From: Paramoeba atlantica | Lineage: Eukaryota > Protista > Discosea | Direction of reading: 5' to 3' | DNA length: 64,000 bases | NCBI GenBank assembly: GCA_977017575.1 | Contig: CDRNVI010000169.1 | Span: forward strand, 62,001-126,000 | In this document: positions 4,755 to 44,700 of the stretch, piece after piece | How the letters are laid out: every line of letters starts with the position of its first letter | Position numbering within the stretch: the stretch's first letter is position 1 | Made by a program: the position numbers and the translations under genes | The notes under the pieces: generated by a model | The model's database searches: none | What the model was told of the DNA's origin: nothing | What the model saw: only the letters and a program-made list of their open reading frames with translations

Positions 4755-4951
4755 GTTTTTCTCAAAAAAAAAAAACTAAGAAAATTAAAAGATCGAATTT
4801 GTTGTTCAAATTAGAAGAAACGCGGGGTTTTCCTGCAAACAAGTTTTCTCAAAAATCAAATTCGGTCTCACATTTTTTTTTTCAACTGTTTTTTTGTTGT
4901 TGTTTTGTGTCTGCAGACCGGGTGGGGAAAACACCACCCCCAAATGAAAGG

Positions 4952-6800
4952 ATGATTGCGGAAACTTTGGATTTCCTCGAAAGACATGTCATTCAAACCA
5001 TTGGAGAGAAGGTTTTTTCTTGAAAACTCTTTGAAGATCGCTTTTCAAACAATATTCCTTTGACAATTCCTTTTCAGGAATGGAAAAGGATTTTCGTCAA
5101 AGTTGCAGGTTCAACTGAGGCTCTTAAATCACATATGGCGCTCATCTTAGGTCTTCTTTCTTGGATTCCCTTTTCCTTTCCCTTCCCTCCCCCCACCCCC
5201 CCCCTTTTTTTTTTCTTCCTCTCAATTCAAGTATTCGATGTGATTAGTGAACAATCTGTTTCGGGAAGTGTCCGAGGCGACAGGTACCCCAATGGACGCT
5301 CTTTTGTTTGAGGTTTGAATTTTTTTATGAATGCAATTGATTTAAGAAAGAAACATCAAAAAAAATGTTTCCTCTACCAGGCAGGACAAATCTGGATGCA
5401 AACTTTCAGTCTACAATCAGAGAGATTTGCATATCTCTTAGATGCTGCTTGTAGTGCCTCACTCTTCAATGCCTTTCATTTTTTGAATCAATGTTTTATT
5501 TATGGGAAAATTAAACAGTGCAATGGTTTTCTTCTTTTTTTGTGAGTTTTTCGTCGCTTCTGATCTCAATTTTCTTCTCAGGACAAAATTTCCCTTTCAT
5601 CCTCCCGCTGAGAACAGAGAAACCGGAAGAAGAAGACCAGCAGAAGAGTGGATCTCTTCTCAGTCATTCAGAAAAAAATTCGATTACTACTTCTGCAAGT
5701 CCTCCCTCCTCCATACCTGTCAGCAATAGTTTTCCTTCAGCCAGACCTTCCTCTACAGAACTACCTTCCTTATCCGTTACAACTTCCCCCTCTTCTCCCC
5801 TTAGATCTCCTGGAACTCATATACCCCGCCTTAGTATTCTCGGAGCCTCCTCTTTTCGATCTGGTTCTTCCCTTGGATCTCCTGAATCTCCACTCCGACC
5901 TTCATCTCCTTTGGAAAGGGATCTCTCGTCAAGTGATTTCCACAAAAGCTTATCTCCAGTGGGCCCTCGCTTACACACAGCACTTGCTGTAACTGTCGAA
6001 AGAGTTTCTCAGGAGCACAAAAGGGACGTAACTCAACACGGCTCAAAAACCAAAAAAGCCTACCGCCTTTCAGGTTCACTTAAGATCAATCAAGGAGATG
6101 AACGAGGAAGAAAAAGATCAAAATCATCTTCTCATGCTGATGAAAATCTTTCCACACCAAAGCCCGCATCTCCCCCGTCCCAATCTCTTTCGGAAACTCT
6201 TGAACCACAAAACGAAAAAAGTATCGAAAAAAGAATCACCACCAAAAAGAAATCATCTATGTCTCTCATTTCGAAAAGAAAAATCAAAAATACCGACTCC
6301 AAAACACCTCCAAAGATGAAAATACAGATTGACACTGTCCAGGATGGGAAAAAAATAGGGTTTGTAGTCAACTTTCCAGACATTATTTTATATTTTTCGT
6401 TCTTTCTTCTTAAATTATTTATTCTTTTCTCGATGTAGAGGTAAATCACGATTGCTCAGTGTAGATAGAGTTAAAAGAAGAAAAAAGAAGGAAAATCCCC
6501 CTCATCGTGGAGGAAAATCTCCCGATAAAAGGAAATCAAGACGCACGACAAAATCATCAAAGAAGAAGTCAGTCTCTTTAGCTGTTCGGGTGGTACCTGC
6601 TATGAGTGGCCCAGCAAGTAATATTCACTTTATTATGGGTGCTTTATTTGAGTTTGTTCAGGTATGAAAAAAAAGAATTGAACCATTTTTTTTTTATTTT
6701 ATTTTTTTCTGATTTTTTTTTGATAGTCTTATTTCCAAGCCTTTGTCGAAGTGAAAGTTAAAATTCTTGAGGAGTCACCAATTGAAGAGAAGTCACCAAT
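4952..6800 (+). other. H-NOX/HNOB-like domain interrupted by a ~280 aa Ser/Pro/Lys-rich insertion
   Basis: MIAETLDFLERHVIQTIGEK|EWKRI resembles sGC beta1 [38 protein letters not shown] resembles ILQMFGKMFFVF. FIMGALFEFVQSYFQAFVEVKVKIL resembles [23 protein letters not shown]. Alignments are by eye against remembered sequences. Confidence 0.7.
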
Positions 6801-9800
6801 TTTTAACAGTACTAATATCTCTCGTGATCGTGGAGATCAGATTCTCCAATTTACTTGGAAAGAAGTACCGAGTAATATTGAACTTGTCACAAAGTTGAAA
6901 CAAATGACACAAAGAAGGATTGAAAAAAATACGGTTTTGGCGCCTCCATCACTTTTTCTTTTATCCTGGTTTCTTTTCTTTTCTTTTTTAAAGTTCTCTC
7001 TGGTGAGGGAGAATTGAGAAATTATTAATATGGTGATTCGTTTGAATCACTCCTCAGATTTCGGCTTACAAATTCATAATAGGAACGATTTTCTTGTGAA
7101 AGAATTTCCATTTCATGTTTTACTCAATCAAGAAGGTGTGATTAAACATCTCGGCAGAAATCTCAAATTGTTATTTCCAACTCTTTTGGGGGATGATTAT
7201 ACCTCATATATGACAATTCTTTATCCAAATGTGTATGTGAATGGAGATGCTGATCTTTCTGTTCTCAGTTTTGACCATTCCTCTGGTTCTTTTTTCTCTC
7301 TTTCAGAAAGAAAAAGAAAGTTTTTTGAATTTTTGAATTTTTGATTTCGTCTTGCAGAGGGGATTGTTCAATTATCTACAGAAGATTCTCTTCGTGATTT
7401 GGTGAATACATCTTTGGTTACAAGTATGAGTGATTTGTTTTGAATCAAATTTCTGTTGTTATTGAAAGTACTTCAAATTTTAACTTTCATTTTTATTTAG
7501 TCACATTGCGAGGATACTTTTTCCGCCAACCAAAAGGATATATCCTCTTTGTTGGAGCACCACTTTTAAAACTCTCAACTGATTTAGAAGCGTTGTGTCT
7601 TGATCCGGAAGAACCGTTCTCTCCCCACGACACAGCTATCCGCTATTTGGCACAGATAAAAGGAAAAGCCTTGAATGAAGAAGTTCTCTTTCCCTCTTTC
7701 CCCTCTTTTTTCTTTTCCTCACCTCTGAAGTGAAACCTGATTATTTATTATCTCTTCCTTTTCTCTTTAGGTTGGTGCAAGACCAGACTTTAAAAAAAGA
7801 GCTGCAGAAGTGGGTCATCAGGTTGTTCCTATGGGATGGCAAATGGGGAAAAGGTCAGGAGATCGATTGAGAACAGCACTTGGTTCTAGATTGTCCCAAG
7901 AAATTGAAGTGGATCCTGTGTTTCTCCAAGAACAAGATGATCAACCTCAAGAACAGGGAATTGTTGTGGAAAGAGAGAGAATGGAAGAAGGTGACGAAGA
8001 GTCGAAGATGATTCTTGGTGAGCTTGAGCTTCATCAATCGATTATCGATGAATTGTTTCCATTTCATTTTCGTGTGAGTTCGGATATGATGGCGATTGGG
8101 ATTGGTCCTGCTCTACAGAAGGTGTTTCCTGAATTTTCTTTTCATTCCCCATTTACGATTAGTCAAGCGATTTCAATTGTTTCTCCAAAAGAAATTTGTG
8201 GTCCTTTTTCGACTGAACCTTTCCTTTATGATTTCAAAAATTCAAATATTGTTCTTTCTGTTCAGGTACTTTTTTTATTATTATTATATTCTTTCTCTCT
8301 TTTCAATTTGAAACTTATCCATGATTGTAGAACCGTGATAAAAAAATCACGCTTCGAGGAGCAGTTTATTGTTGTTCAGTGCCAGTTTCATTGGGGAGTT
8401 GGATGTTTGATCAAACTGCCTCTGTTGAGATCTTTTATTTTCTCTGTTCTCCAGTGTTTACTTCACTCAAAGCAGTGAGTAATCTCAATCTTTCTTTGCT
8501 CGATTTCTCAGCCCACGAGCCAGTTGCTTCTCTTCTTTTAGGAGATATCGCAAGTGATCAACGAAAGGTGCCAGTTTCCTTTTGTGGAGTCCAAAAGGAA
8601 GTGCTTTGTTCAATGTCCTTGAAGGTCCGAACGGTTCTCCGTTTTCTTGCATTGAAATTTAACATTCCTCAATCAATTCGAAAGTCATTTGGTCTTCTTG
8701 CATTTGATGGGATTTCCTATTTAAACAATGACAAAACGTTCAATGAAGTTTGGGCATCAGGGAAAATTACACTCTGTCCTCTTCCAACTGCATCACTCCA
8801 AACACACATAGTTTATGGCCATTCAAATACAATTAACAATCTTTTACAAATGGGGGCGGGTAATTTGGGGGCGATTTTTGAGAACCAAAATACTATTTTA
8901 CATGAGTATTGTGCAATTGACCGGGTTGATCTTTTTGCTAAATTTTTGGGTTTGCCTGATGCTATTAAATGGGTTCGTAATTTGAATTCGAGTGGCGATA
9001 CCCCTTTGGTTTGTATTTTTTTATTTGTTTATTTTTTTTATTTGTTTATTATTTTTTGTTTATTATTTTTTGTTTATTTGTTTATTTGTTTATTTTCTTT
9101 GATTTCTTTTGTTGAATTTATGTTTTTCTTTTCTTTTCTTTTTTCTTTTTTTTTTTGCAGGCTGTGGCTTGTAGATGTCGGTCTGTTAAAGTTTTGCCAA
9201 TCCTTGTTCAGTTTTTAAAAGGCTCCGATTTTCAAAATTGTAGGTTCACCATTTTTCTTATTTTTTCTATTTTTTTTCTATTTTTTTTCCCTTCTGCCTC
9301 ATTCATTTTTTTTTATTCAAAAAAACCAAAAGACAAGTTGTCGGAACAATGAACAGAAGTTTCGATCATGCGAAATATATCACTTCTCTTCATTTATTGT
9401 GTAAATATCCTTGGCCACCTGAACATGAAGTTCTTTTTTATGATATTTTGCATAATATCACTGAAAAGAATACCTCTTTGCAATGGGAAATTGCAAAAGG
9501 TTTTGTTTTGTTCATTATTTGTTTGTTTATTTATTTTTATTTATTTTTTGGGATTTTTTTTCTTTTCAAATAGACAAGAGAGTGGAAGGGTATCCTCTCC
9601 ACTGGGCAGCAGCGTACGGAAATGGTTTCGCTTTCCGTTTTTTGGTTCGATCAAGAGGACAAAATATAAATCATCGCTCTCCTTTTCAGGAGACTCCTTT
9701 GTGGGTTGCTGCTGATAATGCCAACTGGACTTGTTTTTTGGGTATTTTTTCATTTTCCTTTTTTTATTCTTTAATTGAGGGGTTTCTTTTGTGCACTCTT

Positions 9801-12800
9801 TTTTTTCTTCATTTTCATCTTTCCCTCTTTTTGAGACGAAATGACTCAAAAACAACAGATATCCAAAGATATGGAGGTGATCAATATATTCCCACAAGTG
9901 ATGGGGCAATGTGTGCAGACGTTTTTCTCCCATGTTTCAAATCTGAAAAAGGTTTCTCCGTTCGGTCAAAAAACGGAATGCAAGAACAAGTGAAATCAGA
10001 TTATTTAGTCGTTGAGGATGTCACGGGGAAAGAAAAGAGACAAAAAGCGCTCTCTTCTTTTCATGGAGTTCCTTGGGGTCAAAATCTGAATTTATTAAAA
10101 TTGTGGCGTCTTGTAAAGGAAAATGAAATTGATTCTGTTGTTGAGTTTATTCATCACTTTCCTGTTTTGGAAAACAAACAGACGAGAATTTTGGGGATGA
10201 TTTGGGCTGCTTGTCGAGGGAGGTTGCTTTTGCTTGATCATTTGCTTGGGATTGAGATGCTTGGTTTTGGTTCTGAGGGTGCTCTTTATGTTGAAGGTTT
10301 TTTGTTTTTGTTTTTTCTTTTTTTCTTTTTTCTTTAAGTTATTTCCTTGAAAAATTTATTTCTTTTTTTTTATAATTTGCGTGTGATGAAAATATCTTGT
10401 TTATATAAATACAATTAAAACAAAACAAATAATAGAGGGACCTTCAATAATGGGAGCGTTATGTCGAAAATGTCCTGAAGAAGAAGAAGAATTGTATTTA
10501 AAAGTAATGGAAAAGTTATTTGAAAGACGTGGAGATGTAAATGGAAGAATTGAAAAAAGTGCTTCAAATACTTATTTGCAAGAGGCGATTTTTTCAAATA
10601 ATTTTGTTGCTTTGACTTGGTTGTTGCAGAAGGGTTTTTTGTTTTATTTTTGTTTTATATTTTTCTTTCTTTCTTTCTCCTTTTTCTCTTTATTTTTTCT
10701 TTTTTTTGGTGGGCCTCCGTCCTCTCTCTTTCTCTTTCTCCTTTCTCACCTTTCTTTCTCAAAAGGTGCTATTGTTGGACAAAGAACAACGGACAATTAT
10801 ACTGAGTTGCAATTAGCAATTGTTTGTGGGAACCCCAAAATTTATCAACACCTTCTCCTTTCAACAGGTTTTTTTGTCACATTTTTTTCAAAATATCCAT
10901 TCATTTTATTATTATTTTTAAAATACAATTTATTAATATTTTTTTTTTGTTATTTTCTGCCAAAATAAAACAATCAAATAGGAGAAAAAGATGAAACTGC
11001 ACTCTTTGCAGAAAGTATTGGGCGTCCTACTTTCTTTGATAGCCTTTCCAGCCAAGAAGAAGGACATTTCAGCGAAAATTCAAATATCGCAAGATTGTCA
11101 TTCCGTTTTTGTGATTTTACGCCATTTAAAAAGAAATTGGGAGAAATTTATGGATCTTGGATGTTAATTGATATAAAAGAAGAGAAATATCTCCAAAAAG
11201 TCCAAGAGGTAAAAGAGAGAGTTGAAAAGAGTGGGAGAATATTCACCGAAATTTCATGCATTTGTTGCTTGTTTTGAGTCGAGGAATTTAGTGAAATTTA
11301 TTTTGTGTTTGAATTGTCTTTCTCCAAAGATTATTTTGGATGAGTTTGACATTCCTTGTGACGCCGAGGGGCGTGATTTGTATCGGAAATCGGGTCATCT
11401 TGAGAAGAGTTTGGAGGAGAGGGAAATTGATTTTGAAAACACTCTGGTTAATTTGAGGTTAATTTTTTTTTTTTCTTCTTTTTCTTTTTGGGTAGAGTTT
11501 CTTCTCTTTCTTCCTTTTTTGTTCCGTTATGTCAATTCTCACTCTCTCTTTCCTCTCTTCCTCTCTCTTTCCTCTCTCTCTCCTCTCTCCCCCCTCTCTC
11601 CCCCTCACTATTGATAGAGTGGATGTGAGTTTATCTCTACAATTAGAAGAAGAAGGGTTGAGTGAGGATGAAATGTATCAAACTTTTTTTCAGCATCAAG
11701 AAAAAAATGCTGTTTCAAATTTAGGGCTTCATCAAATGGTTCATGGTTCAAGTTCTAAGGGTAATTTCTTTTTTCTTTTCTTTTTTTTTTTCTTTTCTAT
11801 TTTCTTTTCTCTTTTCTTTTCTTTCTTTTTCTTTCTCTTTGGGCTTTTCTAGGGGTAATTTCTTTTTTATTTTCTTTTCTTTTTTCTTTTTTTCTTTTTT
11901 CTTTTATTGTCTATTTCTTTTTCAATTTCTTTTTTCTTTTCTTTTCTTTGGGTCTTATTCTTTCTCTCTCTTATTCTTTCTCTTGTTCTCTTTTAGAAGA
12001 AGCATTTGAATATGTACATCCAAAAGCAGGGGACAATCTTATTTCTCGATTGGACTGGGCGGGGAAAAAGAAACTTCCACTTCGTTTTTTTCATGACTCA
12101 CATTCTCCTTTTTATTTTTATTTGATTATTTTTCATCCTGTTGGTTTGTTTTTATTTTATTTTTGTTTTATTATTTTTGTTTTATTATTTTATTTTATTT
12201 TATTTTTTTCTTTTTCTTTTTCTTTTATCTTTATTTCTATTTCTATTATTATCAAATTTGTAAATAAAAAAATTTTGACCTTTTTTCTTTTTAAGGAAAA
12301 AAGACTTTTCGCAAAGTCCATGCGATGAAGGTTTTCTTTCTTTTCTCTCTCTCTCTCTTTCTAAATCAAATAAATACATAAACAAAATAAATAAATAAAT
12401 AAATAAAAATAAACAAAATAAATAAATTTTAAAAAAGGTGGATAAAGACAATTTTCTTCAATCAAAATTTGAAGTTGATTCGACTCTTTATCTTTCTCAT
12501 GAGGGTTTTCTTTATCGTGATTGTACTGTTGAAATTTGGGCGCAGGTTTTTTTTTTTTATTTATTTTTTTATTTATTTTTTTTTCATTTTTTTTTTCATT
12601 TTTTATCATGCTCCATTTTTTTTTCTTTTTTTTTTTCTTTTTAATTTTTTCTTTTTTCATTTTTTTTTCTTTCCCTCTCCTTTCTCTCTCTTCTTCTTAA
12701 ACATTCTTCGCACAAAAAACCACTTTCTCAAAAATAGATCAAGAAAACATTAATATTGAGTCAAGAATCAGAAATAATTTCTGATAATTATTTGTTTCGA

Positions 12801-12862
12801 GATTGTGAGTTGGTTGGCAGGGGCGAAATTTTGCTTGATCCTGTTGTTACTTCTTCTGGTTT

Positions 12863-12903
<41 letters not shown>

Positions 12904-15900
12904 TTTATTTATTTTGTTTTTATTTTTAATTTTATTTTGTTTTTTGTTTTTTGTTTCTTTTATTTTTTTTTTCTTTTTTTTTCTTTTTCTTTCTTTTTCT
13001 TTTGTTCTTTTGTTTTCTTTTGTTCTTTTCTAATTTTTCTCTACCTTAAACAGAATTGATAGTTCAAATCTCAAAAGGCGTGGGTTTGGTATGTCTCCAT
13101 CCAATCTTAAAACAAAACAAAACTCATTTTCCTCAATAACAAAAATCCATTTCCCAAAAAAAATTCACTAAAACAAAACAAAAAAAAAAATAAAACAGAC
13201 ATCAAAATTGTATGGAAAAGTGAAATATCATTCGGGAGAATCGGGATTGGCGGGGCCACAGAGTCGTTATGTTTCTTTTCCTATTACTGATCGTTTTAGT
13301 TCTTTGAAAGAGTTGGTTGGGAAGGGGTCTGTTGGCAAGATTTTGTCTCAGTTGGCTTATACTCCTGTTTATCCTGTTGGTTTGTTTGTTTCTTTTTTTT
13401 TTTATTTATTGTTTATTTATTTATTATTTGTTATTTATTTATTTATTTATTCTATTTTATTATTATCTTTGGGAAGGGGTCTGTTGGCAAGATTTTGTCT
13501 CAGTTGGCTTATACTCCTGTTTATCCTGTTGGTTTGTTTGTTTTTTTTTATTATTTGTTTTTATAAAAATATTTATTTAGATTTATTTAGTTCATTATTT
13601 ATTTATTTATTTATCTATTTATTATTTATTTATTTATTTATTATTTATGTTTTAATAAATTACATAAATAATAAAAATTACCGTTGACAAGATTTTGTCT
13701 CAGTTGGCTGATACTCCTGTTTATCCTGTTGGTTGGTTATTTATTTATTTATTTATTTATTTATTATTAACTGATTATTAATTTATTATTGATAAAATGT
13801 TAAATGATCAAATGCATTTTTTCTTCTTATTTGTTGTTTTCTCTTCTCTTCTCTTCTCTTTTCTCTTTCTAATTCTGAAAAATAGTGATTGTTCCTGGAT
13901 TTTGTTCGTCTGCTTTAGAAGTTCTTTCAAGTTATAAATTTCCTGCTTGGGAAAAAACAAGAGTTTTTCTTTCCTTCTCTTCTTTTTTTCTTTTCTTTCG
14001 TCTTTTTCTTTCTTTTTCTCTTTCTCTTTTTCCTTCGTTTTTTTAAGAAAGAATTTTTTTAAAAGGTTTGGATTGATCCAATGAAGATTGGAAATTTGGC
14101 CATGTACCAGAAACTTAGAACCAAGTTTTTTTCTCTTTTTCTTTTTCAAAATCTCTTCTTTTTTTTCTCTTCTTTTTTTTTTCTCTTCTTTTTTAAAATC
14201 TCTTCTTTTCTTTTTCTTCTCTTTTTTCCCTCTCTTCTCTCTCTCTCTCTCCCTCTCACTCATCCCTTTTCTCTCTCTCTTTTCTTTCTCTTCTTTTCTC
14301 TCCCCCCTCTCTCTTCTCTTACAATAAAACAAAACAGAAAAACAAATGATCCAGTGAGTAGACAGTGGTTGAAACATATTGCTCTTGCTGAGGATGGTTT
14401 TTCTGATCCTGAGGGTATTAAAGTCCGTCCTGGTTTGTTTTGTTTTCTTTTTTGTTTTGTTTTTTGTTTTTTATTTTTTGTTTTTTATTTATTTATTTTT
14501 ATTTATTTATTTTTATTTTTTTATTTTATTTTTATTTATTTTTATTTATTTATTTATTTTTAAAAATTTTTATTTATTTTTATTTATTTTTATTTATTTT
14601 TTAATTTTTGTTATTTTTTTTTTTTCTTTTTCTTTTTTTCTTTTATCAATTTATTTCCTGATTCTCATTTTCAAAATAGTGAGTGGATTTTCTGGTTGTG
14701 ATTATTTGGTTGAACAAACTTTAATTCGTCCACAATCTTATGTTTTGGGACCTCTTATTGCTAATCTTCTTGATTTGGGGTTTTTTATTCTTTTATTTAT
14801 TCTAATTCTTATTCTAATGGACGGGATATTATTTGTTTTTATTGATTATTTTCATTTTATTTCATTTTATTTTAATTTCTATTTCGTTTTCCTGACTCTT
14901 TTTTTTTTAATTATCCTCAAACAAATTAAGAATTAAGAATCATTAATTTAGAATTCCAAAAATAAAATGCTCATTTAAAAAATTATTTAGTTACGAAGCA
15001 AGAAATTTAGTAGCAGCAACATATGATTGGAGATTACCACCAACAAAATTACAAGAAAGAGATGGTTATTTTACCTATCTTTTTTATCAGATTTCTTCTT
15101 TGAGGGAGATTAATCGTCAGCGTGTTGTTTTGATGGGTCATAGGTTTTTTTTTTTTTCTTTTTTTTTTTTGTTTTTTGTTTTTTGTTTTTTGTTTGTTTT
15201 GTTTTGTTTTTTTGTTTTTTTCTTTTCTTTATTTTTGTTTTTTTTTTTTGTGTTTTTTTTTTGTGTTTTTTTGTGTTTTTATTCTTTTTTTTTGTGTTTC
15301 TTTATTTTGTTTCTAATTTTTAATCTTTTTTTTTAAAAAAATTCTTTTCTCTTTTCATTCTCCTCTTTCTTTCACCCATCTCCCCCCAACACACCACACA
15401 AACACAAACAAACGCAAACAAAACAGCATGGGAAACAAAGTAATCCACTACTTCCTCCTCTGGGCGGAAAAAAACAAGGGAAAAAAATGGATTGATGAAA
15501 ATGTCCATTCTTTTATGGCTCTTGGTGCTCCTTTTTTGGGGGCTCCTAAGGCTGTTCGTTCTGTTGTTTCTGGTGATCGTTTGGATTTGGAAGTTTTTTT
15601 GACTTCTTCTGAGGTTTTTTGTTTTGTTTTTTTTTGTTTTGTTTTTTTATTATTTTATTTATTTTTTATTTATTTTTTATTTATTTTTATTTATTTTTTT
15701 ATTTTATTGTTATTATTATTATTTCTTTTATGGCTCTTGGGGCTCCTTTTTTTGGAGGCTCCTAAGGCTGTTCGTTCTGTTGTTTCTGGTGATCGTTTGG
15801 ATTTGGAAGTTTTTTTGACTTCTTCTGAGGTTTTTTGTTTTGTTTTTGTTTTGTTTTATTTATTATTTTATTTATTTTTTATTTATTTTTTATTTATTTT

Positions 15901-18191
15901 TATTTATTTTTTTATTTTATTGTTATTATTATTATTTCTTTTATGGCTCTTGGGGCTCCTTTTTTTGGAGGCTCCTAAGGCTGTTCGTTCTGTTGTTTCT
16001 GGTGATCGTTTGGATTTGGAAGTTTTTTTGACTTCTTCTGAGGTTTTTTGTTTTGTTTTTGTTTTGTTTTATTTATTTTTTATTTATTTTTTATTTATTT
16101 TTTATTTATTTTCTTTATTCATTCATTCATTTATTTATTGTTTTTTATTTAATACTAAATTATTATTCTTTATTTTTCTTTTTTCTTTTTTCTTTTTCTT
16201 TTGAAGGGTTATTTTTTATTATTTTTTTTTTGAAATTTCGGTTTTCGGTTTTCCTTATCTTTTGTGGAAATGATTTATTCTTTTTTCTCTCTCTCTCTCT
16301 CTTCTCTCTTCTCCATCTTTTTTTCATTTTTCTTATTGACTAAAAAAAAAAGGGTCTTGCAATGTGTCGAAGAATGGCCACTCTCCCGTGGCTCTTTCCG
16401 GTTGATGAAAGATATCTCCCTGATGTCATCGGTTTTTTTTCTTTTTCTTTTTTTCTCTTTTTCTTTTTTTTTTCTTTTTCTTTTTCTTTTTTTCTCTTTT
16501 TCTTTTTTTTTTCTTTTTCTTTTTCTTTTTTTTCTTTTTTCTTTTTTTCTTTTTTTTCTTTTCTTTTTTTTTCTTTTCTTTTTCATTTTTTTTCCCTTTC
16601 TTTTCTCCTCTCATATCTCTCCTCCCCCCCCCCCTCTCTCCCTCCCAAACACAAAACCACAGGAAGAGTAAAAAGATCAGGACATTACCAAACACAAAAA
16701 ATGGCGTCACTTTTAGACTCAACTTCTTCAGATTCATGGAATTTTTTCAAAACTTTTTTTCAAAAAGATGATTTGTATTTGTTGTGTGACGATTCGAGGG
16801 AGAATTCGAGTGTTGTTCTTCCTCCTCCTGTTATGAGGTTTTTTTTTTTCTTTTTTTTTTCTTTTTTTTTTCTTTTTTTTTTCTTTTTTTTTTTCTTTTT
16901 TTTTTCTTTTTTTTTTCTATTTTTTTTCTATTTTTTTTTTCTTTTTTTTTCTCTTTCTTTTTTTTTCTCTTTTTTTCTCTCTCTTTTTTTCTCTTTTTCT
17001 CTTTGCTTTGAGAAATACTTTGAAGAAATTGTGTGAATAAAAGAGAATAATTATTTTTTTTAGACCTCCTTCTGTTGATCATATTTGGAATATTTATGGG
17101 ATTAATATGAAGACAGAAGTTTCTTTTTATTATAAAGATGTTGAGCAGGTTTGAAAAAAGAATATTTTATTGTTTTTTTATTTTATTTTATTTTAGATCT
17201 CAAAAAAAAAATCTCAAAAAAAATTTCTTTATTCTTTTTATTTTTCTTTTTAATATTTGTTTTCATTTCTTTTATTATTTTATTAATAAAAAAATATTAA
17301 CAATTTTTTAAAAGGGACCTTACCTTGATCATAGCGCAGAACAATTTAGGTTTCTTTTGATTCTCTTCTTCTCTTCTCTTTTTCTTTTTTGGTCGACCTC
17401 TCACGCTCTTTCTTCTCTCCCTCTCTTCTCTCTTTCTCCCTCTCCAGTCAGAAAAAATCAGTAGACAATCCAAGAGAATTTTATATCAGTGGAGGAATCG
17501 CTTATGAAACTGGTTTTCTTTCTCTTCTCTCTCTTTCTCTTCTCTCTTCTCTCTTCTCTCTCTTCTCCTTCTGAAGCCCTTTCTCTTCTCTCTCTCTCTC
17601 ATTCACTCTGTTTTTTTTCCACTTTCCTTTTAGCAAAAACATATCAACCCGTGATTCGTGCACACAAAAGTGGAGATGGAACTGTCCCTTATTGTTCTTT
17701 GTATTATGCTTCTTCTTGGAGGTTTTCTTTCTTTCTCTTTTCTTTCTCTTCTCTCTCTTTTCTTTTTCTTTCTTTCTCTCTTCTCATTTCCTTTCTCTCT
17801 CTTTTTTTCCAAAATTGTAGGAGCCAAACGCCAGGTGATGGTCTTCCTCATGTCCAAACAGTGGAAATTCCAGGAGTAGAGCACAGGTTATTTAATTTTA
17901 CAATTGTATTTGATTCTTCAAAAGTGCTTTTGATATTTTTGTGTCTCTCAATTTATTGATATTCTCTTCTAAAAATTCTTTATCTCTTTTAATTTTCTTT
18001 TGGAATTTCTGATTTGATTCAACAATTCTTCCCTCTCTCTTTCTCTCTTTTGTTGTTCTTTTTACAAAAACAGGGCCATGCTCCAAGATGACTATGTTAC
18101 ATTCCGAATACTTGAATTGTTATCCGAAAGAGAAAGACGAGATATTAGTGCAACAAGTCATCGAAGGCACGGTGCTGTCTCAGACTCATAA
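4952..18191 (+). CDS. Multidomain protein of roughly 2,200 aa (estimate): H-NOX-like - 2x HNOBA/PAS - ubiquitin-like - ankyrin repeats - C2-like - LCAT/PDAT-family acyltransferase/lipase
   Basis: About 38 exons joined by hand with matching intron phases, including the bridge 11997-12143 (phase 1), 12296-12330, 12438-12545 and onward into PV|VIVPGFCSSALEV (13886). Junctions near 6.9-7.07 kb and 9.74-10.0 kb have phase-compatible but non-unique solutions. Stop TAA at 18189-18191. Confidence 0.72.
7068..8520 (+). other. Two tandem HNOBA (sGC PAS-like) domains
   Basis: Copy 1: KEFPFHVLLNQEGVIKHLGRNL...ITLRGYFF...YILFVGAPLLKLSTDLEALCL...FSPHD. Copy 2: ELFPFHFRVSSDMMAIGIGPAL...ITLRGAVY...FYFLCSPVFTSLKAVSNLNLSLLDFSAHE. 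Both resemble sGC FPFH...LKGQM...ILFLCSP...LYLSDIPLHD. Confidence 0.85.
8880..10870 (+). other. Ankyrin repeat region
   Basis: NTILHEYC, GDTPL|AVA, TSLHLLC, GYPLHWAAAYGN, ETPLWVAADNAN, TYLQEAIFSNN and TELQLAIVCGN motifs. Confidence 0.85.
13317..13735 (+). repeat. Three degenerate copies of an exon 3' end plus donor site
   Basis: GGCAAGATTTTGTCTCAGTTGGCTTATACTCCTGTTTATCCTGTTG|GTT occurs at about 13335-13385, 13485-13535 and (diverged) 13685-13735. Confidence 0.9.
13886..18191 (+). other. LCAT/PDAT/group XV PLA2-family alpha/beta-hydrolase domain with an intact catalytic triad
   Basis: PVVIVPGFCSS; AATYDWRLP; nucleophile elbow GHS|MG split by intron 15144-15426; LGAPFLGAPKA; catalytic Asp motif SGDGTVP (~17670); catalytic His in GVEHR (~17875). 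Confidence 0.92.
15515..16050 (+). repeat. Tandem triplication (216 and 213 bp periods) of an LCAT exon end plus donor and intron start
   Basis: GCTCCTAAGGCTGTTCGTTCTGTTGTTTCTGGTGATCGTTTGGATTTGGAAGTTTTTTTGACTTCTTCTGAG|GT ends at 15613, 15829 and 16042. Confidence 0.95.
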
Positions 18192-18310
18192 TCATTTAAA
18201 AAACTGAATCAGAACTTGATAATATGAAGAAATATGTATAATAAATTGTTGATATTAAAAGAACTGAGAAACGAAATTTTCATTATCATTATGAAATGAG
18301 TCTCTTATTC

Positions 18311-21300
18311 TCAAAAATAAGAAAAAACCAATTTAAGAGTCACAATCTGACCAGAAGATAAACAAAGAGGTTTCTCCACATCCCAAACATTTCCCTCTTC
18401 CAACAAAGAAAGAGAATAAACTACAGCAGAATCCACCTTCCCAAAAGAGAAGAGAGAAGAAAGATTAACACAAGAGATTGTACTCCATTCTCCTTCCCAG
18501 TTCGGAGGATACATATGCTGAAAACGAGCAATTGTTTCAGTTGTATTAAATACATTTGGTTTGAGAGAGAGCATGCGGAGATTAAAGGGAAGATCTTCAT
18601 TGAGAAGAGAGGTAAAATTTGGAGGAGAGAAGAGTGAAGTTATGTCTTTAAGACTTTTTTGACTCTCAAATTTGTCTTCTTTCTTGTTGCGCAGAGGAAA
18701 GGGAGATGCAGAGAAGAATGAAGGTATCGGAGGTTGTAAATGAAGTTGTGAGAGAGTTCGTCGAACCAAATAACCATTTGACATTTCATCTCCAGTAACA
18801 CATAAAATAGAATCATCCACAATACGATCTTGATCATCTAACGGTTCCCCAACTCCTGCAGGGGGTAATTCAGACGTATTTGTCCTTCGATGCACAAGCC
18901 ATTCCAAATTTCCTTCCCTTCCACAACTTGCGGCATGGCCCCGATCAAACAATACACCAAAACTTGAAGAATGAGATGGGATTTGGTCATGTATTGTCGC
19001 CCAATGTGTTGATGGAAAGAAATATTTTGCATGATGAGAGAAAGAAGTCCCCTCTGGGATACAATCCCTCCCCATTTCAACCAAACCATTTGCATTGGTA
19101 AAGAAACGTCCCTGTAATTGTGAGGAAAATTGAGCAGAAATTTCCACACCACCTGGAATGGGACCAACAGTTGTAGCAACTTGGAGACCATATCCAACCC
19201 CATCTCCGAAAGGATTTTTATCATCAAAAGAAGAAGATCCTGTGACAAGAGAGAACGTTTGGTGGAGGAGATAGTCAGCCTCATATTGAATCGAAACAAA
19301 AGAAGTCACACTTCCATTCCCATACCACATTTTTCGAGGAGTTCCTGCGATTTTTGAGTTCTTTGGACGGAATGTGTAATCTCCATCGTGGTCTGCTTCA
19401 TACTGTATCACTTGATTTGTGAGAGAGATTTGTGTCTTCGTTACATAATCGTAAACACTTTGAAGGTAACCTGTCTTGGAATCAAATGTGACAAGTAAAT
19501 TATCATTTTGAAGATAAATCGGATCTTCCAACGATTCTTCAGTTGATTGCGAGAGAGGGATGGAAAAAATTTGAGTCTCTGCACAACTCTCAGAACTGTC
19601 AGGAGAAATCAAATATCGTTTAATGCCAAGCGGGGGAAGTAAAGACATCCATTGCAATTCATACTGAACTTCTTCATTTTCTTTGGAAAAAGGGAGGGCT
19701 GGGACGAGTTGAGAAGAAACATAATCCCCAGTTTCGAGATCAAGAACAGACATACAGTTGTTTGCTGGGATTGCCACGTTTGTATTTCGTGTTTGTCCAA
19801 TTGGGTTGTACCAAATGACTTCGAATTGCTGCGATTGAAAAGAAGAGGAAAGATGAAGAAGTTGTTGTTCATGTTGTCGTCCTTGTTGGTACTGGTACGG
19901 GTTTAAGATTGAATGCAAGATCTTTTCTGAACGAAAGAGAGATTGGTTAAGCATTTGGAGATAATTTTGAACAACATCTCCACGTGCTGTCCCTGTTACC
20001 GCATCATGATGAGCCAAGATCCCCGAGGTTCCTCGATTTTCAAAGAGCTCCTCTCTTTCCTAAAAAATAATCTTTGGATCAGGAAAAAAAAAATAAAAGA
20101 TTAATTCTTTGAATTGCTGTGAAGAAGCAGATGTTGGTTTTCTTTTTGTGTTAGAAACTGATTGACCTGTGATGTAATTTGACCTTTCCCAACAAGAAGT
20201 TGGTCAACAGCATCTAAAATTGCATCAGTGACTCGGACTCTCTTCTTCAGAGTTGGTCGAGAGGTGTAGAACCCACTCCACCAGGAGTCAGGAAACTGTT
20301 TCAATTGAAAAAATGAAAGTTAGAAAAAGAGAAAATAAGATGATTTTTCAGAATAAAAAATAATTTTTACCTCGGCATAAGGATAAAAATCAATCTCCTC
20401 TGATAACACAGGCCACTTTACACCCTCCTCCTTTTCCAAACTTTCAAAAAAAGCAGACAAAGTCGAGTACTGAACCGTCACATTAAATAGGAGACGATTT
20501 GCATTGATAAAATTAATGAGTTTGTCATAGTTGGTATATTGAAGAGAAGCATTTTGATATGCAAAGTCAAAACCAATTGGGATTAAGATCTTAATGAATG
20601 AGGAAAAGGGAAAAGTGAGAAAGATAAAGAAGGAGATTAAGGGAGAAAGAAAGGTAAAGAAGAAAAAGAAGTGATAAGTAAAACCACTGAGAGAGGAGAG
20701 AATAAAAGAGAAAAGCAAAAAAAAAAAGGGGGGGGGGATGGATCCTATTGGTAAAATAAAAAAAACCTGATTTGTTTTATACTCTTTGGCACGAAGACGA
20801 GCAATGGCAACAAACTCTGCTGCTCTCTCCAAGATATTTGTGTCTGTAATTGGAGGAGATATTTTTTCTGGTTGCTCAAAGTCAAAAGTAGGAGGAAAAC
20901 CATATAATAGCTGATCCAACGTATGAACAAAGAGAGAGGTTGTGCTATTTGTATTGTTACCCTCATTTTTCACTTGAAAAGAGTTGTTGTTGTTGACACC
21001 AAGATAAGAAGTATCCCAAAAAAACTCCATCACATGATTCTTCTCTACCTTTCCCTTAATCAACCCAATCCTGTCAGTCACCAACCCTTTATATCCAATC
21101 AAAGAAAAGAGATGTGTATTTGCACTGGAGGGACCAAAAGGGTCGATTTGCCATCCAATTTTTGGTTTTGTATTGAGAATGTTTTGGAGCCAGAGGTGCC
21201 CAAGTTCATTTTGGTTAATGATTGCTTCATAGCTTTGGGAGAAAAGAGAAAATTTAAAGATGGATTATGAAAGGAGAAATAGATAGAAAGAAAAAAAAAT

Positions 21301-38732: not shown

Positions 38733-41700
38733 ATGACAACAATAACAACACAAATCGAAGTATTGGAAAAAGCATGTTCACCATTTGGAGAAAGAAAAGA
38801 AACTGATTTTTCTCTTTCTTCTTCAAAATCTGCTCCTTCTGTTTCTCTTTCTTCTTCTTCTTCTGGTTTTTTTTTGTTTTTTTTTTTTTTGGAAAGAGAA
38901 GGAGAGAAGAAGAGAAGAAGAGAGAAGAGAGAAGGAGAGAAAGAGGAGAGGAGAGAGAATTTTATTCCATTTTTTTTCTTCTCTTCTCTCACATTCTTTC
39001 TTTTCCTTCTCCTCTCTTTTCTCTCCTTTCCTCCTCTCTCTTCTTTCCTCTTCCTCTTTCCTCTTTTCTTTTCTTTCTTCTTTCTTTTCTCTCTCTTTCT
39101 TTCTACTCTTTCTCTCCTTCTCTCCTTCTCTCTCTTTCCTCTCTCTCTTTCCTCTCTCTTTCTCTAGAAATAAGTAGAGAACAAAAGATACAAGCAATAA
39201 GAGGAGCAGCTCGTCATTTGGTTACTGTTCGTATTCCCAATGTCCAAAAAGCAAAGAAAGAATTTGTCTCTCTTCTTCAGGTCTCTCTTTTCTCTCTCTT
39301 TTCTCTCTCTTTTCTCTCTCTTTTCTCTCTCTTTTCTCTGTCATTTGGTAATACATGTTTTCTCTCTTTTATGATTAATATTCTTTTATTACTTTAATAA
39401 ATTAATTCATTATTAACAAAAAAATACAAGAGAAAATAGTTCGATATTTGTTATTAATACATGATTGATATCTTTTTTATTAAATCAATAAGTTAATTTA
39501 ATAAAATTACTAACAAAAAAACAACAACAACAACAGAAAATAGTTCGATATTTGTTATTAATACATGTTATTAATTATTTAATGAATTAATTCATTTCTA
39601 ACAAAAAAAACACACAACAGAAAATAGTTCGAGATTTGTTATTAATACACGATTTATATCTTTTTTTATTAAATCAATAAGTTAATTTAACAAAATTACT
39701 CACAAAAAAAACAACAGAAAATAGTTCGATATTTGTTATTAATACACGTTATTAATTATTTAATTCGTTTCTAACAAAAAACACACACAACAGAAAATAG
39801 TTCGATATTTGTTATTACTACATGATTTATATCTTTTTTTATTAAATCAATAAGTTAATTTAATAAAATTACTAACAAAAAAAAACAACAACAACAGAAA
39901 ATAGTTCGATATTTGTTATTAATACATGATTGATATCTTTTTTATTAAATCAATAAGTTAATTTAATAAAATTACTAACAAAAAAACACACAACAGAAAA
40001 TAGTTCGATATTTGTTATTAATACATGGAGATTCAGATCAAAATGTTTGTACTGCTGGGACTGAGGCCCTTTTTATTGTGTTGAGAGAGTTTGTTACTAA
40101 GCCTTATGCTGATATTATTATTCTTCAAGTTTTTAAAGGTTTTTTTGTTTTTTTGTTTTTTTGTTTTTTTTTTTGTTTTTTTTTTTGTTTTTTGTTTTTT
40201 GTTTTTTGTTTTTTTTTTGTTTTGTTTTTTTGTTTTTTGTTTTCCATTTTTATTTTTTATTTACTTTATTTGCTTTTATTTACTTTTGGAAAAGTGATTT
40301 TTTTTTAAAAAAACTTTTTTTTCACAGTTATTAGACCATCATATCCTTCACGGACCGTTCGAGGTTTCTTTTCTCTCTTTTCTCTCTCTCTCTCTTCTTT
40401 ATCTCACTCCTTTTCTCTCTCTCTCTTTTCTATTTCTACAGCGGGACTAAACATAATAGGAGCAATATCAAAACATATTAAACCAGCCAGAAGTAGAAAA
40501 TATCTCAAAACTGTTCTCCAAACAATTGAATTTCTTCTCGGTGTTGTTCAGAGAGAGAAGAGGGAAGAGAGAGAGGAGGGGAAGAGAGAAGAGGAGAAGG
40601 GGGGAGAGGAGAAGGGAGAGAGAGGGAGAGAGAGGAGGGGAGAGAGAGAAGAAGAGTTTTTTGGGGATCCGTTTGGGGTGAGAAGAGATCCTTTGGTTCA
40701 TAAGGCTGTTTCTGAGATGATTGAAAATGTTTCTGAGATTTTGATTTTTTATATGAGAGAAAAGGAAGCTCAGAGTTTGATTGAGTTGTTGAGGTTTTTT
40801 TTTTTTCTATTATTTTTTATTTTTTGTTTCTTTTTTATTTTATTATTTTCAGTTTAAAATCAAATAAAGATAATTCTTGGGTTGAGAGGCACTTTTTCGT
40901 ATTCTGAAAGAAATTCCTCCTTTCTTCTCTCCTTTCTTCTCCTTTTCTCTCCTTTTCTCTCTCCTTTTTTTTCTCCCTTTCTTTCCCCAGCTCCTATCTC
41001 ACAGACAAACTGCCGGCCATTCGCCGTTCCGCCTCATCTTCGATTAGTAGTATTTGCCGTCACTACCCGAAAAATGTCTTTGCTTTTGCTGTGACACAAC
41101 TCACCATAATTTGGGATCGTCACGCTCCTCTTTTAGAACATCGAATTCGAGTTCTTTTCTTCTTTTTTTTTCTTCTTTCTTTTTCTTTTCTGTTTTTGGT
41201 TTATTATTTTTCATAGACCCCAAGTTCAGTGAGAAACCTCTCTGTCCCTTCAAGCGACGAGGTTGCGAAAGAGGGGAAAGAGTTGAAGAGAACTTTGTCT
41301 TCTCCTCAAACAACAAATCTATCAACTCCAACAACAGCAGCTCCAACAACAGCTCCAACTCTTTCAACTTCAACTCCAGTTCCAAATATAGGAGGAAATG
41401 GAACCAATTTTGGAACAAATGGGGGGACACCGGAGGGGGTTGCTCATGGTGTATTAATTGCTTGTTTGGATTTGGTTAAACTTTCTGGTTCTTTTTATTC
41501 TCGTTCTCGTGATGTTCGCCAACCTATTTTGCCTCATTATCCAGGTTGGATTTTTTCTTTTTCTTTTTTTTTTCTTTTTCTTTTTCTTTTTTTTTTTTCT
41601 CTTTTTTTTTTTCTCTTTTTTTTATTCTTCTCATTTTTTGAAATAGTTCTTTTTCGTTTTTTGTTGGAAGTAACTGAGAAACCACTTGATCAGGTTTCTT

Positions 41701-44700
41701 TTTCCTTTTCTCCTCTTCAATCTCTTTTCTTTTTCTAAATTTTATTTAAAGAGCGCAAATTTAATGGCAGCAGCATGGGAGTTATTTTCAGAAATATTAT
41801 CCACACACGGCCATATCATCAATGCTCTCCAACCCCCCTTTTCTTCCTCTGTTCCTATTTCTTCCTCTTCTTCTTCTTCTTGTTCACAACAACCACAACA
41901 ACCACAACAACCACAACAACCACAACAACCACAACAACCACAACAACCACAACAACCACAACAACCACAACAACAACCGCGTCTCTCTCCTCTCTCTTCT
42001 CTTACTGCAATGACTCCACCAATGGGGAGAATGTCACCTCGTTCTACTTCTCCCTCTTCTACTACTGCCCCTTCTCCTCTTCTTTCTCTTGCAGGGTATA
42101 AATCTGATGACGACTTTGAATATAGTGGGACAGAAGATGAAGATGGTCTCAAAGTAAGTCTTGAAGATGAGATGAAAGGAAGAGAGAGAATATTGAGAAA
42201 GAAAATTTGTGTCAATCATAATTGGGAAGATGGATTGGTTCATTTTCGGTATCATTGTCATTGTCATTTACCAAATATTATTACCATTTTGGACAGATTA
42301 ATTACTTGTTTGCTCCCCCAATCTGTTTTAACCCAAACGATAAAAACTCCAATTAGAGAAGGAGAAGAGGGAGAAAGAGAGAAGAGAGAAGAAAAGAGAG
42401 AGAAATTACCTTGTAAAGTGAGTGTGTCTGCTCCTGCTCTTAGTGTACTCTCTCTCTTGGCGACTGAGTATTTTCCTTGTTTTTGGTATATTCTCTTTCG
42501 GACTGATTATAAGAACCCTTGTTCTGTTTTGAAAGGAGGAGAGAGAAAAGAAGACTCCAAAAGAGAAGAAGATAAAAGAGAAGAGAAGAAAAGTGAAGGA
42601 AAAACAATTCTAGAAACAATTCTAGAAATCTATTCAAAGGAAACAGACCCATTGTTAAGAGGGGAATGTGTTTTATTATCTGGTGCTTTAATTCGTTCTC
42701 TATTAATTTGTCCTCTCCCTCTTGATTCTCCTCTTTCTTTTCGCTCTTCTTCTTCTTTATCTTCTTTATCTTCTCTAGCTTCTTCTTCTTCTTCCACTCT
42801 TTCTTCCTCTCTCAATCTCTCTTCCTTCCTTCCTCTCCTTTGCAAAATTGTTTCGCAAGGGATAGAAGATAACTCTGCTACAACTTCCAAATTGGCTATC
42901 CGTTCTCTTTCTTTCTTTCTCTCTTCTTTGGTGGCGAGTTGCTATGCAAGATCGAGTGGCCTCCCTCTTATTCGTTCTCTTCTTCTTTTTCCTTCTTCTA
43001 CTTACTGGGTTGTCAAAAAAGAACTTTTATCAAGTTTGGGAGGAATTGATTTTTTTGTTTTGAAACCAATATTGAAACTTTCTTCTTCTCTCTCTTCTCT
43101 TTCTTCTCTTCCTTCTTCTTCTTCTCAACTTGATTTATTGTCAAGACCACATGGAATGGGGTATGAGGGAGATATACAAGAAGAAGTTGTGAGATATATT
43201 TTGGGACAATTGATTGATACTGATCATCGTGTTCGACAAACTGCTGCTGAGGCACTTGTTGATTTGCTTCCTCGTCTTTCTTGTTATTCTCAGGTTTTCT
43301 CTTTTTTTTCTCTGATTTTTCTCTTTTTTTTGATGAACTAAAATTAATTCTTCTTTTTTGCAACAATTAAAACAAATAAAACATAAAAAATTCACATTTT
43401 CTCACAAAAAAAAAAACATACAAAAAAAAATACTCCAGCTCGGAACATCAAACTCAGTCCCACATCTTCTCTCTTCCTTTCAAAACCACCATCTAGCAGA
43501 AGATTCCCCCTCAGATTTCCAATCTTTTTTTCGACACACAATAATAACAAATTTGTCTTTTTTGATGTCTAAAATTGTTAGTTTGTGTGACGAAATGGGG
43601 GGGGATTGTGGAGATGGTGATTGGGAAGATGGTTTTTTGAGAAAAGATTCGAGCGCTCATGTTCAGCAGAGGGTTGAGGGTTTGAAGGGGGTTTGTTGTT
43701 TAATTTATTTTCTTGATATTTTTATTTATTTATTTATTTATTTATTTCTTCTTATTTATTTCTTTATTTCTTTATTTTTTTTTATTATTATTAGATCTTT
43801 ATCTACTTTTATTCTTCCTCCTTATTTATTTCAAAATTTAAATTTCTTTACTTCTTCAAGGTGTACTTGGCAATGGTCCTCTTAACCGAAAGAAATTGGC
43901 TCGAAGAAAAACACATCCGAACCTTTTTCACAATGTGGAAAAATCTCGGCCGAGCAAAAGAAGGATGTGGAATATTTTCCCCTCCCTTCTCTCTTTCTTC
44001 TTCTCCCTTTCCCTCTCTTTCTCCATCTGATCTTGATGTTGAGGCTCCTGAGGGTGGAGGAGGGGCTGGTGTTGAGTTGATACATCCGATGGGTGTTTAT
44101 TCTTCTGATATTCTTCCTTTGCTTTTTGAGAGGTTTGTTGGTGGCGGTTTTGAGAGAGAGTGAGAGAAGAAAGAAAGAAGAAAGGAGAAGAAGATCGAGA
44201 AATAGAAAGAAAGAAAAGGAAGAAAAAATTATCGATTTTGGTGAATTTTAATCAAAACAAATTAACAACAGATTTTGTTTCTCACCAATATTGGCTGATA
44301 TTGAAGGATCAATTCTTTTATTACGATTAATTTATGTTTTGTTTGACAAAAGTGGGAGTTTGGCTGATGATTATGCTCCTTTTGCTTTGTATCATGTTTT
44401 GAGATTGATTTCTATGTTGACTGCTTTGAAAAGAAGGTTTTTTTTTCCTTTGTTTTTTTTTCCTCTTTCTTTTTTCTTTTTTTTTTTAATCCTCTCTCTT
44501 CTTCCAAAGCAATTTCACTCTCGCATTTTCTGCAGTCTGCACTGGGTTCCCTCTCTTCTTTCCTCCCACTCCTCAACAACCAACTCCCCAACCAACTCCC
44601 CAACCACCACCGCCCTCTACCTCTCCTCCAAGACAAAGAACAAAACAAAGAAGAGGAGAGAGGGGAGAGAGAGGAGGAGAGAGGGGTTCGGGATTGAGGG

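Follow-up and report, generated by a model that had tools for sequence, protein, structure and literature searches.

A Paramoeba atlantica gene that probably joins two HNOBA domains, ankyrin repeats and an LCAT-family lipase in one chain

To our knowledge, descriptions of HNOBA domains concern soluble guanylate cyclases (sGC) and a few bacterial kinases. In sGC the domains follow the order H-NOX, HNOBA/PAS and coiled coil, ahead of the cyclase output, and the HNOBA domains of the two subunits pack together, relaying the state of the H-NOX domain. Degenerate, heme-free H-NOX-like domains also occur in sGC alpha subunits. The gene analyzed here lies in a stretch of 64,000 nucleotides (nt) of Paramoeba atlantica (contig CDRNVI010000169.1), called the window in what follows, and all coordinates are positions within it. 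Judged from its sequence, it is very probably a single gene, coding for a protein in which a domain starting at residue 1, which resembles H-NOX by eye, is followed by two HNOBA domains, ankyrin repeats, a beta-rich segment and a lipase of the LCAT family, so that a lipase stands where sGC has its cyclase. The parts belong to known families and their combination appears to be undescribed in the literature searched, where nothing pairing HNOBA with LCAT was found and the co-mentions of HNOBA and ankyrin were irrelevant. That the locus is one expressed, intron-rich gene with two HNOBA domains, ankyrin repeats and an LCAT domain, having the roles proposed below, is taken here as the likely explanation as a whole.

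Both HNOBA domains were recognized by the Pfam family PF07701, whose gathering score is 23.4 bits. HNOBA 1 was matched in its first exon only (piece 7018-7341, 22.8 bits, E 7e-5, profile positions 6-58), and HNOBA 2 in two colinear pieces, with 21.4 bits at profile positions 2-56 (7771-8265) and 22.7 bits at positions 113-166 (8331-8570); each exon piece remains slightly below the gathering score, and HNOBA 2 belongs to the family when its two exons are combined. The two domains also match each other (28% over 87 amino acids (aa), E 0.002), and the presence of HNOBA twice in one chain is a point absent from the original prediction. They share with sGC the FPFH start and the H-D/E-x-x-x-x-L-x-L-L-G helix, and their number is that of the alpha/beta dimer, although both are here in the same chain; unlike sGC, which has a long signalling helix after the PAS domain, this protein has only a short stretch after each PAS core. 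The Guanylate_cyc family had no match on any exon piece scanned and the chain ends in the LCAT domain, so that the protein is not classified as an sGC.

Among solved structures, a profile made from HNOBA 2 of the family (the window gene and its relatives described below) matches the H-NOXA domain of a histidine kinase from Nostoc punctiforme (PDB 2p04 and 2p08, E 0.002-0.003, profile positions 13-65), and this is the sole non-ankyrin structure matched by the family profile, ankyrin structures being among its other PDB matches. The Nostoc protein is bacterial, has one such domain and a kinase output, and its H-NOX partner is a separate protein. When single HNOBA pieces were compared with PDB by phmmer, no sGC was matched and there was one weak match (E 0.62), again to Nostoc H-NOXA (2p04); in homologue searches with the HNOBA alignments, all open reading frames (ORFs) returned came from the window itself or from the contig of the relative, and no sGC was among them. 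Among eukaryotes, Acanthamoeba castellanii is reported to have H-NOX proteins without guanylate cyclase, whose partner domains are not named (PMC4053784), a precedent for a eukaryotic H-NOX uncoupled from the cyclase, with at most a putative relation to the family of the window.

The ankyrin part announced in the original prediction was recovered by Pfam on 9576-9740 (Ank_3, 29.7 bits, E 6e-7; Ank, 26.7 bits), which places this region in the ankyrin family. A representative search with exon 8331-9008 returned an ankyrin protein only (P0001), and no protein that could be aligned with the HNOBA 2 portion of the exon. Between HNOBA 2 and the repeats there is a segment whose motif FNIP..(R/K)K..GL is shared with the relative (about 1500-1700 of locus L001); an AlphaFold model of exon 8331-9008 alone had a pLDDT of 33 and was not usable.

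The C-terminal part was assigned to the LCAT family (PF02450, gathering score 21 bits) in two adjacent exons, with 34.8 bits (E 1.5e-8, profile positions 82-128) and 57.2 bits (E 2.2e-15, positions 130-183); Pfam scans of the short LCAT exons were blank, these exons being too short. The closest PDB structure is that of lysosomal phospholipase A2 (LPLA2, 4x90, E 0.002), in an alignment that begins right after the Ser. The protein shares PF02450 and the order of the motifs (PVVIVPG, GHSMGN, GAPFLGAPKA, SGDGTVP and GVEH) with LPLA2 (PLA2G15), LCAT and PDAT, and differs from them in the 1,835 residues of N-terminal domains, in insertions between the core motifs and in the lack of signal peptide and transmembrane segment. 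Because no signal peptide and no transmembrane-like 19-residue window were found, the product is predicted to be a soluble protein, presumably cytosolic. The candidate nucleophile is Ser 1999, in GHS/MG (the slash marks the exon junction), whose codon is split between 15142-15143 and 15427, and the other two members of the triad are Asp 2222 in SGDGTVP (17675-17677) and His 2258 in GVEH (17882-17884). GHSMG, SGDGTVP and GVEH fall in columns shared with the relatives P0005-P0007, so the Ser-Asp-His triad that had been read as intact is complete and catalysis is predicted.

Relatives of the LCAT domain were found with the stop-free query 15428-16201, first 62 residues only; they are 60-76% identical to this exon, and the alignment was made with P0003-P0008. 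One of them, P0007, is a transcriptome peptide (EukProt, MMETSP0161) that covers only the LCAT half and is identical to residues 1937-2297 of the model at 163/301 positions (54%), with no gaps at the model junctions except one residue beside 16431/16663. This alignment therefore supports ten junctions, from 15143/15427 to 17886/18074. The coordinates of all features are collected in Table 1.

Table 1. Features of the Paramoeba atlantica locus, in window coordinates (a slash within a motif marks an exon junction)
Feature	Position	Strand	Details
Whole gene (predicted)	4952..18191	+	41 exons, 2,297 aa
N-terminal helical half, H-NOX-like by eye	4952..5622	+	motifs M..E.L.F..., G-x-x-x-W-x-x-I; inner exon choice 5150-5351 ambiguous
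First intron	5012..5077	+	66 nt; splices out in-frame TGA 5021-5023
Low-complexity insertion, ~300 aa	5623..6559	+	S/P-rich, then K/R-rich
C-terminal half of H-NOX-like region	6560..6873	+	LAVRVVPAMSG..., IMGALFEFVQ/SYFQAFVEVKVKILEE, QILQFTWKEV
31-mer share, 6700-9000	6700..9000		expected 0.731; X2 and X3 0.71; X1 1.00
HNOBA domain 1	7083..7682	+	three exons, ambiguous inner boundaries; FPFHV at 7105, PHDTAIRYL at 7623
HNOBA domain 2	8020..8570	+	FPFHF at 8056, AHEPVASLLLGD at 8511; split by intron 8266-8330
Conserved segment, possibly ubiquitin-like fold	8571..8810	+	weak RAWUL Pfam match only
Ankyrin repeat region	8830..10867	+	seven exons; Pfam, PDB ankyrin matches, P0001
Linker exons 10982-11208, 11330-11457, 11618-11760	10982..11760	+	coding/splice scores
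31-mer share, 11618-13379	11618..13379		expected 0.323; X3 0.32; X2 0.51; X1 0.85
Beta-rich segment ("C2-like" by eye)	11997..13088	+	exons 11997-12143, 12296-12330, 12438-12545, 12738-12858, 13054-13088
152-nt tandem duplication	13317..13608	+	exon end plus intron start
LCAT-family alpha/beta hydrolase	13373..18188	+	15 exons; Pfam PF02450
213-nt tandem triplication	15508..16119	+	2.9 copies, 97% match

The gene model was built by splicing by hand and then with a dynamic-programming exon chainer that used codon log-odds and donor and acceptor matrices. It runs from the ATG at 4952 to the TAA at 18189-18191, with 40 introns that are GT-AG throughout, a coding sequence of 6,894 nt and no internal stop. 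The single frame that the original prediction had obtained by hand splicing was recovered both ways, as a stop-free chain of 41 exons, and the details on which that prediction turned were confirmed: exon 11997-12143 ends in phase 1, exon 12296-12330 translates as G/KKTFRKVHAMK, exon 12438-12545 opens with VDKDNF in phase 0, the apparent stop at 12328 is a TGA (12326-12328) that sits in a different frame, and the chain extends to PVVIVPGFCSS (from 13373). The donors follow the consensus AG/GTTTTT, GTTTGT being also common, and the acceptors (TAG, CAG or AAG) are directly preceded by an A-rich tract; introns are T/C-rich and G-poor, and the region is thus made of short exons between pyrimidine-rich introns, two of these exons (12296-12330 and 13054-13088) being micro-exons of 35 nt. 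The AT skew is strongly negative over 8 to 18 kb. Four junctions are ambiguous, all of them with in-frame options: from 5150 to 5232, 5313 or 5351; from 6933 or 6968 to 7019 or 7083; from 7230 or 7285 to 7360 or 7382; and from 9239 or 9243 to 9333 or 9338. The use of TGA as a sense codon was considered and ruled out, since the standard code leaves all other exons without a stop and the TGA at 5021 is spliced out with a canonical intron.

The same architecture was found in the ENA assembly ERZ24894578, whose contig ctg2516l (36 kb; loci L001 and L003) carries two tandem paralogues on the plus strand, genes A and B, both colinear with the window gene in a tblastn search with the full model. Gene A, which ends at 8931, is truncated by the start of the contig within HNOBA 1, and gene B extends from 11511 to about 22673. 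The first exon of gene B is METEKFLEDFVVKKKGKQ, followed by a GTTTGG donor, and its first intron has the same position as that of the window gene (after G-K-Q in gene B and after G-E-K in the window). From there gene B runs through to the LCAT domain with the order first-domain motifs, insertion, HNOBA 1, HNOBA 2 (Pfam E 0.003), FNIP segment, ankyrin repeats, beta-rich segment and LCAT. In genes A and B, the ORFs of the LCAT part (P0003 and P0004) are 76% identical to the LCAT exon of the window, and the N-terminal and ankyrin parts of both genes are only 21-43% identical to those of the window gene. The N-terminal matches are individually weak, and yet there are three of them at E <= 0.03, versus 0.017 per shuffled set, and six versus 0.27 at E <= 3.1. 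By sequence comparison, the order HNOBA-ankyrin-LCAT is thus conserved in at least two organisms, and because it has been kept in them the architecture is probably functional. The minus-strand ORFs within the genes of this relative were considered as possible genes and rejected, as they are E/G/R low-complexity translations of the CT-rich plus strand. A mitochondrial-carrier-like ORF lies between genes A and B, on the opposite strand.

The N-terminal module is not universal in this LCAT subfamily, because another relative, P0008 (L004/L005), has ankyrin only upstream of the LCAT domain. About 5 kb upstream of this ankyrin-LCAT gene, in the same organism, there is a gene with DEP, nitric oxide (NO) synthase oxygenase, flavodoxin, FAD and NAD domains (L004 228-4482, L005 253-4482), with a minus-strand ORF of 975 aa between both. 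From the proximity of this NO synthase gene it follows no more than that organisms of this kind are able to make NO.

The continuity of the gene depends on the exons that link the ankyrin repeats to the LCAT domain, and these were scored with codon and splice models retrained without them. Every linking exon from 10982 to 13379 has its best score in the frame of the model, with no stop in it. Exon 11330-11457 is coding in that frame (37 bits) and stop-free, and it contains no in-frame ATG, so it must be joined to an upstream exon. Phases are compatible at 10/10 linking junctions, most splice sites of this part are above the 85th percentile, and those of the three introns between 12144 and 12737 are at the 92nd-99th percentile of nearby GT and AG sites. 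Most introns of the model are pyrimidine-rich, unlike both flanking intergenic stretches: the G content is 1-18% in 39 of the 40 introns, compared with 13-18% for both flanking spacers and 21% for the exons. The stretches 11458-11617 and 11761-11996, with 6-7% G, are of the intron type. Two more junctions, among exons 12438-12545, 12738-12858 and 13054-13088, are supported by the relative, in which the end of the first of these exons and the other two form one continuous ORF. As a proxy for expression, the share of sampled 31-mers present in three sequencing runs (X1, X2 and X3) was compared with the share expected from the exons of the model alone (Table 1). Run X3 behaves like an RNA run that contains all the linking exons, which supports the exons and not their connection.

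Several points weigh against a single gene with the proposed roles. Intron 11209-11329 is the weakest link, since its GTAAAA donor scores poorly and its 24% G makes it the sole intron of exon-like composition; read-through of it adds 22 residues and stops at the TGA 11275-11277, and could yield a shorter isoform without the lipase. Intergenic spacers in this genome are short, of about 120-200 nt, as seen between this gene and the divergent minus-strand gene that ends at 4754 (spacer 4755-4951) and the GH38 gene that converges on it from the minus strand, with its stop at 18311 (spacer 18192-18310), so that on spacing alone a terminator and a promoter could hide in a linking intron. For all that precedes the LCAT half, the colinear sequences of the relatives come from genomic DNA rather than from transcripts, and the RNA nature of the runs was deduced solely from word shares. 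The assignments of the first domain to H-NOX and of the beta-rich segment to C2 are without statistical support in the exon-piece searches, and the mechanism is one that we infer by analogy, from what is known of sGC and of the LCAT family.

The atypical intron, with the stop reached by its read-through, and the short spacers normal here would suit two neighbours on the same strand, an HNOBA-ankyrin gene and a beta-rich/LCAT lipase gene, whose joint frame would exist because their splice sites happen to be compatible; the in-frame Met codons of exon 11618-11760 and the ankyrin-only upstream region of P0008 would also agree with such an arrangement. It is nevertheless unlikely, as a second gene would have to accommodate a coding exon that lacks a start codon (11330-11457), the intron-like composition of the two G-poor stretches that follow this exon, ten junctions out of ten in matching phase, and a word share in X3 equal to that expected with all linking exons included. 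Moreover, the two paralogues of the other organism have their parts in the same order and on the same strand, and no real gene separates the two halves. We therefore continue to regard 4952-18191 as, very probably, one gene.

The tandem duplications found within it could be seen, together with the ambiguous junctions, as damage in a decaying pseudogene or as an assembly artefact. The 152-nt unit takes in the last part of exon 13199-13379 (GKILSQLAYTPVYPV and the GT donor after it) together with the beginning of the next intron, with a partial third copy near 13688-13731; the extra copies fall in an intron of 506 nt in the model, leaving spare donor sites there. The 213-nt unit comprises the 3' part of the LCAT exon GAPFLGAPKA...TSSE and the start of its intron, and copies 2 and 3 lie in an intron of 739 nt, where they have GGAG instead of the GGGG of copy 1, which creates an AG before a 72-nt in-frame stretch. 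The relatives of the LCAT domain align across this junction without an insert, so the triplicated copies are not part of the conserved protein. Two duplications of exon ends and four junctions whose best-looking sites do not fit in phase are what speaks for decay or artefact, which is nevertheless hardly credible for 6.9 kb of exon sequence that is open and bounded by canonical sites, with the triad motifs intact, the duplicated copies confined to introns, the exons present in RNA-like runs and homologues conserved.

The first domain is the most debatable part of this single chain. The original prediction had proposed an H-NOX/HNOBA sensor, of which the HNOBA half was found by Pfam, whereas the H-NOX half had no match in Pfam, PDB or Atlas on the pieces searched. 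Compared by eye with what we take to be the H-NOX consensus, the region presents in the H-NOX order a G-x-x-x-W-x-x-I near the start, a G-Q-I-W-M helix, a His-bearing helix and a P-F-I strand before the insertion and, after it, a strand, a G-A-L-F-E-F helix and alternating V-E-V-K-V strands. In addition, the domain begins at residue 1, as H-NOX domains do. The motifs are conserved between the window and the relative (the helix G-x-(I/N)-W-M, the P-x-F strand, the G-A-L..F helix and the V-E-V-K-V strands). The comparison with the consensus is a lead and not a test. The insertion, probably disordered, splits this domain, a difference with respect to sGC; S, P, T, K, R and E make up 62% of residues 141-445, and in gene B it has the same site but is K/D/E-rich, not S/P-rich. 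His 112 (5477-5479) has about the right spacing for the proximal His, but by eye it is not aligned with the His of the relative. The Y-x-S-x-R heme-propionate motif was not seen; at the place expected for it the window has, by eye, V-x-P-x-M (from 6584) and the relative, also by eye, F-x-G-x-R.

Pfam HNOB (PF07700) gave no match even at E <= 10 with exon pieces of the window or of gene B, a weak test with pieces of 20-74 aa; solved H-NOX structures were not matched either by PDB phmmer or by a two-species profile on short pieces of the first domain, and Atlas gave no family for 5315-5527. These blanks are weak because of the length of the pieces, the domain being cut by introns and by the 300-aa insertion. 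They would nevertheless be expected if the first domain were no kin of H-NOX and the HNOBA pair stood behind a lineage-specific helical domain, with no link to heme or gas, in what would still be a single gene. The candidate His not shared by the two species and the existence of HNOBA in chains that lack H-NOX (as in the histidine kinase of Nostoc, 2p04) agree with such an origin, while the by-eye motifs, their conservation and the start at residue 1 argue against it, and we consider it a serious contender, with somewhat less than an even chance. H-NOX ancestry of the first domain is slightly favoured, and heme binding by it is clearly less probable than that ancestry. Since the heme-propionate motif seems to be missing, a heme-free regulatory, dimerization or scaffolding module would be at least as likely as gas sensing.

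The beta-rich segment that precedes the LCAT domain had been described as C2-like, an identity that the searches did not support: pieces of 36-73 aa from the window or the relative, whose shortness makes the blanks weak, had no C2 match in Pfam or PDB, nor had a three-sequence profile compared with PDB, and the resemblance is one seen by eye. Several of its motifs are kept in the relative, namely PF.F.(L/V)I(I/F), (D/E)CE(L/M)VG(R/K)G and LLDP.

Regarding the neighbourhood, the convergent gene at 18311-21102, on the minus strand, codes for a GH38 alpha-mannosidase (with Glyco_hydro_38C and 38N matches), and about 120 nt separate both stop codons. A huntingtin-like gene lies further downstream on the plus strand (41686-43341, perhaps to 50616), where the Pfam family Htt_N-HEAT matches an ORF of 551 aa with E 5e-18.

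The one-chain HNOBA-ankyrin-LCAT fusion put forward in the original prediction is supported, whereas the control by gas, redox or Ca2+ proposed with it is speculation, H-NOX and C2 being the parts without a match. By analogy with the LCAT family, the C-terminal domain would be a phospholipase A or transacylase that works at a membrane, with glycerophospholipids as its substrates. The protein may be brought to partners or membranes by its ankyrin and beta-rich parts, and the N-terminal module may control its activity or assembly. The two HNOBA domains could pair within the molecule, as the alpha and beta PAS domains do in sGC, and through this pair the remainder of the chain would be informed of the state in which the first domain is. 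In the most specific form of this proposal, a working sensor of the H-NOX type, with heme or a small ligand, would switch the phospholipase or acyltransferase on or off through the intramolecular HNOBA pair, turning NO, O2 or redox signals directly into lipid remodelling or lipid mediators, with no cyclic GMP involved; we regard it as quite doubtful, and distinctly so.

If it were true, the sensor module of sGC would be coupled in eukaryotes to an output other than a cyclase, here a sensor-switched lipase. Should the module regulate the lipase, the conformational relay of sGC would have been re-used for a different output, and the HNOBA pair in a single chain would lend itself as a natural model for the PAS heterodimer of sGC. 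Heme binding by the first domain would connect gas sensing with lipid signalling by a new route, and its absence would make this protein a further case of a degenerate, heme-free H-NOX-like domain, as in the alpha subunits of sGC. Either way, the gene would be a compact example of how domains are shuffled, taken from a protist lineage of which few members have been sampled.

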